Positions 16,024 to 53,223 of a DNA stretch of 64,000 nt are shown here, in pieces; within the stretch, counting starts at the first letter, position 1; every line of letters starts with the position of its first letter. Origin of the DNA: Oculina patagonica (lineage: Eukaryota); assembly GCF_052425735.1 (NCBI RefSeq), contig NC_135762.1:22878001-22942000 (forward strand), in the 5' to 3' direction. Made by a program: the position numbers and the translations under genes. The notes beneath the pieces were generated by a model. That model searched no databases, was not told the origin of the DNA, and worked only from the letters and a program-made list of their open reading frames with translations.

Positions 16024-18070
16024 TTAATAAACAAACCATTTTGACGGCGAGTCGCTATGTTTGCATTCTTTCGATTCACTTGTTTCTTTCCAGTTACACC
16101 GCTGACCACTTTCGTCTACCTCGCAGTGCTCAAACCGCCTCCAGCAAATCGATTTCCACGTGCGAGACAGCTCACGTGCCTTCTGTTCACATCCGGGTAA
16201 CCTCTGGTCGCATTCAGAGTCTGATCCAGAACACTTGTGAGGCTTGAAGCGGCATTGTCGACACCCCGCCTCATAGTACCCCCGAAGGTTCGCTTTTTGA
16301 CGTGAGGTCACTTTGCCCCAGGGCTCCCGCAGGTCAGAGAATTTCGTGAACAGCTTACCACCTTCGATAATATCGCCGTATATGAAGTACTCTGTCCCCA
16401 TTTTGATCCCAAATGGTCCAGAAACTGTGTCTGACATGTAACTGTAGGGTGTATAGAGCTTCGTCGTAAGTTCTGTGTCCAGCACGCCAAAAGCTCGTTC
16501 TTGTTGGCCGCGTGAGATTCCTTTGAAAACTTCTTTAACGGTGATGACGAAAACGTCATGATGGCCCACTTTTTTAGGCCCTGATACAACAATGGCTCGT
16601 ATCACTAGAATAAAAAACAAGGGTTATTATAATTTGTTTTCCTAAAGGCCAAAAGAGCACTCTAAGATGAGGGACCTGAAGGGGTAAAATGGGAACTGGG
16701 ATTTGCCTGTTTTTTCATCCTCAATATTCCACTGGAAAATGAGATTTGAGACACTGGGAGTAGGAATCACAAACCAAAAATAGGACCTGGACTGGGATTT
16801 ACTGGATCAGGGCAAAAAATGGGCTCGCAAAAAAAATGGGATTCATGCCCCCCCCTCCTCCCCCCCCTTTCAGGACCTAATACAAAATATGAAAACTGAA
16901 ATGATAAACCCAAACAAAGGCTTGGTAAGCTTGTTACAGTGCCCTCCACCTTTTCGAATAATACTATTGATAATATTTTTAAGGTATTGACTAGAAACGC
17001 TTAAAATAAAAAAGAGAGAATGGGTGCAAAAAGTGAAAGCAAAATTTTAGGCAACAACTCGAAGCATGATACTTTGCAATCGTGTTTGCTGGTTTGGTTT
17101 TCTCGCAACTTAGTTTTTTCGCGGGATCTCGCGTGACTAGAGCGCGAAGCCGGCGCGAAAAGGGGGTTACGCGCGCGCAGGTAATGACTAAACTAATCCA
17201 AGCTATGATTTCGCAGTTTAACAAAACGACTTAAATACCGGAAGATATTAATTTAAGACATATTTCGCAACTCGTAACTCCGGAAACAGACAACGGCTCA
17301 CTTCTTTCAGTTACGATACTGTTTTTGCGGCCCAGACCAATTCTTTAAAAGATATTTACTGTTGTAAATGAAGTAAATTCTGCCATAAAATTAATATTTG
17401 TAGAACTTAAAGTATAAATCCTGAAAAATTTAAGTGACTGATCTTCAGGAAACCGCAGATTTAATAACGTTAGTGGATACTTGAGAAATAGAACTTTGTT
17501 TCTTTTAACCGCTCAGATTTGACAGCGTGAATGTTAACGAACACGACTAATTTAGAGCAAAGAAAAAAGCGCCGTAACGCTCAACCGAAACGCGTATAAA
17601 TTCATCAAATGTTGAGTACAAAATCCCAAAATGTTCTTTATACTTAACTCGAATGAGATTTTTTATGGTTTGATATTCATTTTGACAGAAGAACACGACC
17701 CATTTAGAGCAAAAAAGCGCTGTAACGCACGGCTGAAACGCGTACAAATCCATCAAATCTTGAATGACAAAATCCCGTAATCTTGAGTTTTTCAAAGCAC
17801 AGTAGGAAAATTACGACTTCTTTTTATTAAGAAGCTGGCCGTCCCGCGTTCTTTCAATACGTTGGCTATGTAATTTGCCTTTCAAAATTTCTCTCTTCTC
17901 TCGGCACAAAAATGACAAAATTTCCTTTATCGTGAATTTGTAAACTTACCGAAGTCTGCTTCACAAAAAGCTTGCTGTGGGTGTTCCAACTGCATAAGTC
18001 CTGCGTAAACGATAGCATAAGACGAAGATAGGACACATAAGATCACCACTAGATAAAAGTGGGCTGCCAT
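16024..18070 (-). CDS. TIMP: TIMP-like secreted protein, copy 1 (two-domain, 233 aa, lacks N-terminal CxC)
   Basis: Exon 1 18070-17950 (MAAHFYLVVILCVLSSSYAIVYAGLMQLEHPQQAFCEADF, donor G|GTAAGT), phase-1 intron, exon 2 16604-16024 (VIRA...VKEVFKG...LYTP...EYFIYG...YEAGC plus a Cys-rich C-domain). HPQxAFC, VIRA and FKG are TIMP hallmarks. Confidence 0.88.
16668..16879. mobile_element. MITE-like element in the TIMP intron, shared by all three units
   Basis: gagggacctgaagggg ... cccctttcaggacct ends with internal actggga repeats; also at ~32343-32540 and ~51786-51980, so it predates the duplications. Confidence 0.55.
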
Positions 18071-18162
18071 GGCATACGACTTGTACTTTAGTTTTTTGAT
18101 GAAGTACTTTCTCGCTTTCTTCAGGGAAGTTCTTCTGATTTGAGCGTGGTTTTGTTCATCTG

Positions 18163-51137: not shown

Positions 51138-53223
51138 TCAATAAACAAACCATTTTGAAGGCGAGTCGCTGTTTTTGCATTCTTTCGATTCACTTGTCTC
51201 TTTCCAATGACACCGCTGACCACTTTCGTCAACCTCGCAGTGTTCGAACCGCCTCCAGCACTGAATCGATTTCCACGTGCGAGACAGCTCACGTGCCTTC
51301 TGTTCACATCCGGGTAACCTCTGATGGCATTCAGAGTCTGATCCAGAACACTTGTGAGGCTTGAAGCGGCATTGTCGACACCCCGCCTCATAGTACCCCC
51401 GAAGGTTTGCTTTTTGACGGGAGGTCACTTTGTCCCAGGGCTCCCGCAGGTCAGAGAATTTCGTGAACAGCTTTCCACCTGCGATAATATCGCCGTATAT
51501 GAAGTACTCTGTCCCCATTTTGATCCCGAATGTTCCTGAAACTGTGTTATCAATGTAACTGTAGGGTGTATAGAGTTTCGTCGTAAGTTCTGTGTCCAGC
51601 ACGCCAAAAGCTCGTTCTTGTTGGCCGCGTGAGATTCCTTTGAACACTTCTTTTACGGTGATGACGAACACGTCATGATGGCCCACTTTTTTAGGCCCTG
51701 ATACAACAACGGCTCGTATAACTAGAATAAAAAACAAGTGTTATTATAATTTGTTTTCCCAAAGGCCAAAAGAGCACCCTAATATGAGGGACCTGAAGGG
51801 GTAAAATGGGAACTGGGATTTGCCTATTTTTTCATCCTCAATATTCCACTGGAAAATGAGATTTGAGACACTGGGAGTAGGAATCACAAACAAAAAATGG
51901 GACTGGTACTGGGATTTACTGGATCAGGGCAAAAAATGCGCTGGAAATGGGATTCATGCCCCCCCCCCCTTTCAGGACCTAATACAAAATATGAAAACTG
52001 AAATGATAAACCCAAAAAGGCTTGATAAGCTTGTTACAGTGCCCTCCAGGCCACGTTTTCGAAAAATACTATTGAAAATATTTTTAAAGTATTGACAAGA
52101 AACGCTAAATAGAAAAGAGAGAATGGGTTCAACAAGTGAAAGCAAAATTTTAGGCAACAACTCGAAGCATGATACTTTGCAATCGTGTTTGCTGGTTTGA
52201 TTTTCTCGCAACTTAGTTTTTTTCGCGGGATCTCGCGTGGCTAGAGGCTAGAGCGCGCGCGAAGCCAGCGCGAAAAAGGGGTTACGCGCAGGTAATCCAA
52301 GCTATGATTTCGCAGTTTAACAAAAAGTCTTAAATACCGGAAGATATTAATTTAAGACATATTTCGCAACTCGTAACTCCGGAAACAGACAACGGCTCAC
52401 TTCTTTCAGTTACGATACTGTTTTTGCGGCCCAGACCAATTCTTGAAAAGATATTTACTGTTGTTAATGAAGTAAATCCTGCCATAAAAATGATATTTGT
52501 AGAACTTAAAGTATAAATCCTGAGAAATTTAAGTGACTGATCTTCAGGAAAACCGCAGATTTAAGGTATCAGTCAAAAAACCGCCCCCCCCCCCAGATTT
52601 AATAACGTTACTTGAGAAATAGAACTTTGTTTCTTTTAACCGCCCAGTTTTGACAGCGTGAATGTTAACGAACACGAATCATTTAGAGCAAAGAAAAAGC
52701 GCTGTAATGCTTGGCAGAAACGTGTAAAAATCAATCGAAAGTTGAGTACAAAATCCCGAAATGTTCTTTATACCTAACTCAAATGAGTTTTGTTATAGTT
52801 TGATATTCATTTTGACAACGTGAATGGCCCAAAATAGAGCAAAAAAGCGCTGTAACGCTTGGCTGAAACGCATACAAATCCATCAAACCTTGAATACAAA
52901 AACCGTAATCCTCTTGATACGTACCTAACTCGGAAGAGTTTTTCAAAGTACAGAAGAAAAATTAGGCCTTTTTTTTTAATAAAGAAGCTGACCGTCTCGC
53001 GTTTTTTCAATACGGTGGCTATGCAATTTGCCGTTCAAAATTTCGCTCTTCTCTCGGCACAAAAATGACAAAATTTCCTTTATCGTGAATTTGTAAACTT
53101 ACCGAAGTCTGCTTCACAAAAAGCTTGCTGTGGGTGTTCCAACTGTATAACTCCTGCGTAAACGATAGCATAAGACGAAGATAGGACACATAAGATCGCC
53201 ACTAGATAAAAGTGGGTTGCCAT
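51138..53223 (-). CDS. TIMP: TIMP-like secreted protein, copy 3 (two-domain, 234 aa, lacks N-terminal CxC)
   Basis: Exon 1 53223-53103 (MATHFYLVAILCVLSSSYAIVYAGVIQLEHPQQAFCEADF), exon 2 51721-51138; frame and splice sites intact. Confidence 0.88.

Follow-up and report, generated by a model that had tools for sequence, protein, structure and literature searches.

TIMPs are mechanistically defined by Cys1 and two ridge disulfides. Their inhibitory action relies on a ridge held by the Cys1-Cys70 and Cys3-Cys99 bonds, for which both the mechanism and the disulfide map have been reported (PMC9409782). Cnidarian TIMPs that do not begin with Cys-X-Cys (CxC) were noted by Nicosia et al. in 2016, who excluded AmTIMPa/d/f/g, AvTIMP and the Nematostella proteins from their analysis since Cys1, which coordinates the zinc, was absent (PMC4860685). 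Here we describe a group of such homologues encoded in a stretch of 64,000 nt from the stony coral Oculina patagonica (NCBI RefSeq assembly GCF_052425735.1, contig NC_135762.1, positions 22,878,001 to 22,942,000 of the forward strand; hereafter the window). The window carries three copies of a two-exon TIMP-family gene, all on the minus strand, which together with their relatives in other corals are referred to below as clade A.

Clade A resembles the set of Nicosia et al. in being a cnidarian TIMP homologue without Cys-X-Cys. By the lengths given it would differ from their Acropora proteins, which were stated to be 158-180 amino acids (aa) long, whereas clade A proteins have 233-235 aa and two domains. 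CxC-less cnidarian TIMPs had thus been noticed and set aside, but the clade A orthologues bear automatic NCBI names only, and their accessions gave no occurrence in the searchable literature. What is new here is an independent second lineage without these cysteines, the variability of residues 2-3 and of the C-D connector, and a conserved microsynteny.

With the vertebrate TIMP-1 to TIMP-4 (PF00965; PDB 1UEA, 1BR9), clade A shares a predicted signal peptide, the two-domain fold, the motif HPQ.AFC..D.VIRA in the same register, the equivalents of Cys13-Cys124 and a cysteine-rich C-domain, with a structural Z of ~15 for the predicted model. Unlike the vertebrate proteins, it is without Cys1, Cys3, Cys70 and Cys99, its connector is ~3 residues longer, and its C-domain has eight cysteines instead of six, as in other coral TIMPs.

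A coral TIMP clade without the ridge disulfides

In copy 1, the coding part of exon 1 (17950-18070) specifies a predicted signal peptide, after which the mature protein would begin with G-L-M-Q-L-E-H-P-Q-Q-A-F-C-E-A-D-F. Exon 2 (16024-16604, stop codon included) encodes the remaining N-domain, which is free of cysteine up to the motif YEAGC, and an eight-cysteine C-domain, with a Pfam TIMP match of 46 bits; the intervening intron (16605-17949) measures 1345 nt. Copy 3 has a predicted signal peptide and the mature N-terminus G-V-I-Q-L-E-H-P-Q-Q-A-F-C in exon 1 (53103-53223) and an intact exon 2 (51138-51721). The uninterrupted products comprise 233 aa (copy 1) and 234 aa (copy 3). Exon 2 of copy 2 (31694-32277) is an open frame, and its exon 1 (33908-34026, 119 nt) is disrupted: a 3-nt deletion and a 1-nt insertion shift the reading frame and bring in an in-frame TGA shortly ahead of the cysteine of AFC. 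The introns of these copies are of the GT..AG type and in phase 1, exon 1 ending in phase 1. The exon-2 products matched Pfam TIMP (PF00965) at 46.2-49.6 bits against a cut-off of 23.1, so that the profile check proposed in the sequence-only reading of the window came out positive (46-50 bits).

The precursors have a hydrophobic N-terminal stretch, followed by a conserved small-x-small|G site. Cleavage is predicted by eye at VYA|G, which follows the -3/-1 rule and is the only site conserved in all orthologues. In copies 1 and 3 the mature protein would start, after the leader end ...VYA, with G-[LV]-[MI]-Q-L-E-H-P-Q-Q-A-F-C; across all clade members the start is G-[LVFI]-[MIFS]-Q, and Cys1-x-Cys3 is not present. 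In a phmmer search against the PDB, His29 of the Desmophyllum orthologue precursor (mature His7) paired with His7 of human TIMP-2 (E 1.5e-9), and the segment HPQQAFC.AD.VIRA was nearly identical between the two proteins. Because of this alignment, Gly1 takes the place of Cys1 and residue 3 (Met or Ile) that of Cys3, with no gap. One pocilloporid paralogue departs from the register, with two to three extra residues after Gln4 (G-L-I-Q-K-P-V-L-E-H-P-Q), while its sister paralogue keeps it.

In an alignment with canonical coral TIMPs of 14 cysteines, the columns of Cys1, Cys3, Cys70 and Cys99 were free of cysteine in all of the at least 17 clade members, the Cys70 and Cys99 columns holding D/S/N and S in every one of them. 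The equivalents of Cys13 and Cys124 and the eight C-domain cysteines are invariant in the clade, and the latter share columns with those of the canonical coral proteins; the Cys13-Cys124 pairing would therefore appear to be retained. The ridge disulfides Cys1-Cys70 and Cys3-Cys99 cannot form, because in window copies 1-3, as in the orthologues, the stretch from the Cys13 equivalent to that of Cys124 is devoid of further cysteines. Each mature protein contains 10 cysteines, lacks an N-glycosylation sequon and has a pI of ~8.5.

These results agree with the sequence-only reading in coordinates and motifs: it had placed the mature N-terminus in the TIMP register without gaps, and had reported the loss of the four ridge cysteines with retention of the Cys13/Cys124 pair and eight C-domain cysteines (10 in total). 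Its description of the register as exact applies to the window copies and to most members; the pocilloporid paralogue with the trunk longer by two to three residues is the exception.

Transcription and selective constraint

RNA contigs from three sequencing runs (X1-X3) skip exactly 16605-17949 and join position 17950 to 16604 of copy 1. They show zero mismatches to copy 1 exon 1 up to 18085, 15 nt upstream of the ATG, and thereby extend the 5′ untranslated region to at least this position. Where they differ from copy 1 in exon 2, they do not match copies 2 or 3, and the non-synonymous changes mostly shift towards the state of the orthologues. By this comparison, the contigs are assigned as alleles or close relatives of copy 1. 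Transcripts of this gene type therefore exist, spliced as modelled.

An alternative first exon that supplies CxC was considered and ruled out on three grounds. The contigs end just upstream of the ATG, and RNA depth is zero over a further 3.3 kb upstream of copy 1 (upstream of 18160). Metatranscriptome cDNA contigs of two other species contain stop codons in frame with the ATG, 8 and 31 codons before it. Finally, a six-frame search of the whole window for the CxC pattern picked up nothing but the single-domain TIMP next to the array, at 59811, and gave no candidate for a CxC exon close to the copies.

Full-length relatives with the same N-terminus were found in Orbicella faveolata (XP_020607994.1), Desmophyllum pertusum, Pocillopora damicornis (XP_027047412.1) and Stylophora pistillata, and further ones in additional assemblies and metatranscriptomes, so that the same start is seen at no fewer than 10 loci of several species. 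The loss of the four cysteines is thus conserved in related genomes, a point which the sequence-only reading had proposed to check. Every named clade A species is a robust coral, and a word-indexed protein search gave no named clade A member from Acropora or Porites; clade A occurs at least in robust stony corals.

In many of the database entries for clade A, the N-terminus of the gene model is wrong. A different irregularity is seen in PFX34340.1 of Stylophora pistillata, a model of a clade A paralogue that has a long Asp-rich tail (runs of D, G and N) in place of the C-domain. Another sequence (P0156) gives a normal C-domain for the same gene, and the acidic tail, which would recall the acid-rich skeletal proteins of corals, is probably a gene-model error.

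The ratio of non-synonymous to synonymous substitution (dN/dS, or omega), computed pairwise by the Nei-Gojobori method (NG86), was 0.09-0.25 for comparisons across species and 0.22 for copy 1 against copy 3. When the domains were taken separately, omega among Oculina, Orbicella and Desmophyllum was 0.07-0.09 in the N-domain as compared to 0.11-0.14 in the C-domain. Gly1 is encoded by GGA, GGC and GGT and is invariant as a residue; the codons of Gln4, Leu5 and Glu6 also vary synonymously while the residues stay constant. Because codon variation at these four positions is synonymous only, the N-terminal trunk is conserved at the protein level. As judged from these sequence comparisons, the residues of the ridge disulfides have been replaced, and the rest of the protein, including the trunk G-x-x-Q-L-E-HPQ, is under strong purifying selection. 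Variability in the clade is highest in the C-D connector, at mature residues 71-77, and at residues 2-3. Of the 12 substitutions that separate copy 1 from copy 3, 6 fall within 22 ridge-equivalent residues (binomial p = 7e-4 in a post hoc test).

These data bear directly on a reading in which the genes are pseudogenes or are mis-modelled, with the CxC exon lying elsewhere. The frameshift and stop in exon 1 of copy 2, and the wrong N-termini of many database models, are what such a reading would have in its favour. It is largely refuted by the intact frames of copies 1 and 3, by spliced RNA contigs that join the exons and whose 5′ end lies 15 nt before the ATG, by the upstream in-frame stops in the cDNA contigs of two other species, by omega values far below 1 and by the recurrence of the same N-terminus across loci and species, and we regard it as very improbable. 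Of the marks of a pseudogene (a broken frame, omega of ~1, lack of transcripts), a broken frame is seen only in exon 1 of copy 2; the frames of copies 1 and 3 are intact, omega is 0.09-0.25, and the spliced RNA matches copy 1 or its close relatives. The proposal in the sequence-only reading that the cysteine loss was selected and is not decay is supported by the low dN/dS between species and in the N-domain, by the spliced transcripts and by the conservation of Gly1 across species. Its description of the genes as intact and amplified goes too far: copies 1 and 3 are intact, but copy 2 is disrupted, and the expansion is local, with one or two copies at the loci of other corals.

Phylogeny and repeated loss of the ridge cysteines

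An exhaustive profile search yielded 46 representatives at E <= 1e-3, and a maximum-likelihood tree was built from 50 sequences. Clade A was monophyletic with support of 100/100 and was set on a long stem. A second set of proteins without the four cysteines, clade B, which includes XP_022786627.1 of Stylophora (annotated as 'metalloproteinase inhibitor 4-like'), was joined (support 100/99) to proteins in which Cys70 and Cys99 are still present. Trees in which clades A and B were forced together were rejected by the approximately unbiased (AU) test (p = 7e-7). Because of this rejection, the paired loss of the four cysteines is placed at least twice in the tree, and on these sequences clade B lost them independently of clade A. 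Like clade A, clade B consists of two-domain coral TIMPs in which the four ridge cysteines are absent and 10 cysteines are kept; unlike in clade A, its N-terminus is several residues longer and the register is lost.

Other branches show related patterns. A pair of sequences (P0047 and P0038) is also without Cys70 and Cys99. In a further group (P0026, P0027 and P0029), Cys70 is missing and Cys99 is present; P0026, the only one of the three with a complete N-terminus, has Cys1 replaced and Cys3 kept. Paired loss of the ridge disulfides seems to be recurrent.

Predicted fold and possible functions

The mature Desmophyllum orthologue, modelled by AlphaFold2 with a 44-row alignment, had a mean pLDDT (predicted local distance difference test) of 81 and a pTM (predicted template modelling score) of 0.77, with residues 1-3 at a pLDDT below 50. 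In Foldseek, the 19 best PDB matches were all TIMP-1, TIMP-2 or TIMP-3, with E down to 1.7e-10, and VIA-align superposed model residues 1-193 on chain residues 1-180 of TIMP-1 with a Z of 15.1, covering both domains. The ESM Atlas returned nothing beyond 'TIMP'. The predicted fold of clade A is thus that of a two-domain TIMP, with an N-terminal OB/NTR barrel and a C-domain, and the non-TIMP fold that would have spoken against the sequence-only reading was not seen in this model. Taken together with the transcripts and the selective constraint, clade A genes are functional and transcribed, and encode a presumably secreted protein that descends from TIMPs and has their two-domain fold.

Weaker fold matches were the NTR of PCOLCE, the NtA domain of agrin and the NTR of meteorin (Z 8-9.5), as well as complement C345C. 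The modules of PCOLCE (1UAP), agrin (1JB3) and meteorin (7TLH) share the OB-like barrel and use it for protein binding, not for protease inhibition. They differ from clade A in being single modules within larger proteins, without a TIMP-type C-domain and with no comparable match at the sequence level. That such plain binding modules appear among the matches would suit a structural or matrix component, for instance of the mesoglea or the skeletal organic matrix, in which the TIMP/NTR fold serves as a mere scaffold with no specific protease-related partner. Two reports point in the same direction: a TIMP-domain protein is listed in the skeletome of the octocoral Corallium (PMC7853314), and TIMP-named genes, including Timp1, are calicoblast markers in a single-cell study of Acropora muricata (PMC12019164). 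However, neither the skeletome entry nor the Acropora markers could be linked to clade A, searches for its accessions in the papers being empty, and a scaffold role would leave the strong conservation of the N-terminal trunk unexplained. We consider a purely structural role quite unlikely.

With no Cys1 tethered to Cys70, there would be no rigid N-terminal wedge, and therefore no canonical tight-binding inhibition of metzincins; canonical protease inhibition has probably been lost in clade A. We tentatively favour, at slightly less than an even chance, a non-canonical binding protein, which would bind a metzincin or a partner in the extracellular matrix as a regulatory ligand or decoy. The old wedge face would still be in use, through the invariant Gly1, Gln4, Leu5 and Glu6 and the lineage-variable residues 2-3 and C-D connector, and the highly conserved C-domain may act together with it. 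This reading is favoured by the trunk insertion of two to three residues in the pocilloporid paralogue, which, on the mechanism given in PMC9409782, a canonical TIMP should not tolerate, and by the low modelling confidence of residues 1-3 in the Desmophyllum orthologue. The TIMP fold, the invariance of the remaining cysteines, the transcription, the purifying selection with its synonymous codon variation and the concentration of variability at residues 2-3 and the connector also count in its favour. Several points weigh against it. The invariance of Gly1 and the register preserved in most members would also fit engagement of the zinc by a free alpha-amine. That residues 2-3 and the connector vary could reflect either tuning of specificity or a simple relaxation of loops once their cross-links were gone. 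In addition, the signal cleavage that would expose Gly1 is a prediction made by eye.

Ranked below the non-canonical binding protein, and in our view possible though not probable, is a metzincin inhibitor with a soft trunk. Here the free alpha-amine and carbonyl of Gly1 would bind the catalytic zinc, residues 2-5 would occupy the primed subsites, residue 3 (Met, Ile or Phe) would pack on the barrel and so hold the trunk non-covalently in place of the disulfides, and residues 2-3 together with the connector would set the specificity. The invariance of Gly1 through three codons, the conservation of Gln4, Leu5 and Glu6, the exact TIMP-2 register in most members and the N-domain omega down to 0.07 are all consistent with such a mechanism, as is the superposition of the predicted model on TIMP-1 from residue 1. 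The variable positions, moreover, correspond to the specificity positions of canonical TIMPs, and the differences between paralogues are enriched there. A precedent may be seen in the bacterial serralysin inhibitors (Inh/APRin), in which the N-terminal trunk is untethered and blocks metzincins, its first residue being in contact with the zinc; they form an unrelated family with a different barrel, and their likeness to clade A would be an analogy of mechanism only. Against a soft-trunk inhibitor stand the accepted TIMP mechanism, which needs the ridge of Cys1-Cys70 and Cys3-Cys99 (PMC9409782), the pLDDT below 50 of residues 1-3 and the longer trunk of the pocilloporid paralogue.

A bolder extension of the soft-trunk mechanism would hold that stony corals have at least twice independently turned canonical TIMPs into disulfide-free 'soft-wedge' proteins, which engage metzincin sites via a free Gly1, with residues 2-3 and the C-D connector evolving as specificity determinants. 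We regard this as rather doubtful. If it were true, the ridge disulfides, held to be essential to the TIMP mechanism, would be dispensable, and these proteins would constitute a new mechanistic subclass of metalloproteinase inhibitor.

Clade A has been kept by selection through the divergence of several coral families without the ridge cysteines, and a second lineage has converged on the same state. The two lineages provide a natural experiment in which the canonical mechanism has been removed from the TIMP fold. As such they bear on the functions of TIMPs that are independent of matrix metalloproteinases, on the control of matrix remodelling and possibly on calcification in reef-building corals. 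They could also serve as templates for engineered TIMPs that are non-inhibitory or re-targeted. The practical value is moderate, and similar sequences had been noticed before.

Organization of the locus and its neighbours

The window is AT-rich eukaryotic DNA with a GC content of 38% and three runs of N that mark assembly gaps (3468-3622, 4047-4174 and 35307-35438). A segment of ~16-19 kb is present in triplicate, with identities of 91-100%, and each segment copy holds one of the TIMP-family genes. Copy 3 is separated from copy 1 by a synonymous divergence (dS, NG86) of 0.13 and from copy 2 by one of 0.016, and exon 2 of copy 2 differs from that of copy 3 at 5 of 579 nt. The three copies arose locally and fairly recently by tandem duplication, and one of them is already disabled. 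Exon 1 of copy 2 has two indels and several substitutions, yet its exon 2 is 99% identical to that of copy 3. Either exon 1 was disabled recently, or exon 2 has been homogenized by gene conversion while exon 1 decays.

Clade A is present as a single copy in the 22-kb Desmophyllum locus examined, as two copies in Pocillopora and as one copy and a fragment in Orbicella. The fragment, at 18496-18945 of the Orbicella faveolata locus (L001), is a truncated extra exon 2 that encodes residues 84-233 and lies ~4.5 kb upstream of the intact clade A gene; it is a remnant of tandem duplication.

The locus order of single-domain TIMP, clade A copies and MFS_2 transporter is kept in Desmophyllum and Pocillopora, and the MFS neighbour is also found in Orbicella. 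In the window, an exon of the transporter gene lies at 4966-5514 on the plus strand, convergent with the TIMP copies. The gene runs onward from this exon, and the gaps at 3468-3622 and 4047-4174 are situated just upstream of it. On the other side, the single-domain TIMP (59748-62452, plus strand) is divergent from the copies and falls outside the clade without the ridge cysteines. Its N-terminus is C-M-R-C (CxxC, not CxC), with Cys70, Cys99 and Cys124 all present. Over the stretches read, the product of this gene matches XP_078369442.1 of Oculina patagonica (P0051). A single-domain TIMP likewise flanks clade A in Desmophyllum (1173-2277 of locus L003) and in Pocillopora (5510-6457 of locus L006).

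Remnants or copies of three non-LTR (long terminal repeat) retrotransposons, with Exo_endo_phos, RVT_1 and zf-RVT domains, lie between and inside the TIMP genes, at 22213-24901 (minus strand), 35474-38200 (minus strand) and 60123-61523 (plus strand). The last of these is a reverse transcriptase open reading frame (ORF) in an intron of the single-domain TIMP. The ORF at 35474-38200, of the long interspersed nuclear element (LINE) type, encodes 908 aa without interruption, with RVT_1 and zf-RVT domains. It lies within an intergenic insertion of ~3 kb upstream of copy 2 (35148-38202, minus strand), which is absent upstream of copy 3; the upstream regions of the two copies align up to 35147 and again from 38203. 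The gap at 35307-35438 sits inside this insertion, ~1.3 kb upstream of the copy 2 ATG, and crosses no TIMP exon. Interference of this gap with the TIMP gene models was accordingly ruled out.

Many unrelated RNA contigs, loose at either end, pile up to a depth of 293 on a short repeat in the intron of copy 1 (~16668-16717). This is probably a dispersed transcribed repeat that lies outside the copy 1 mRNA.

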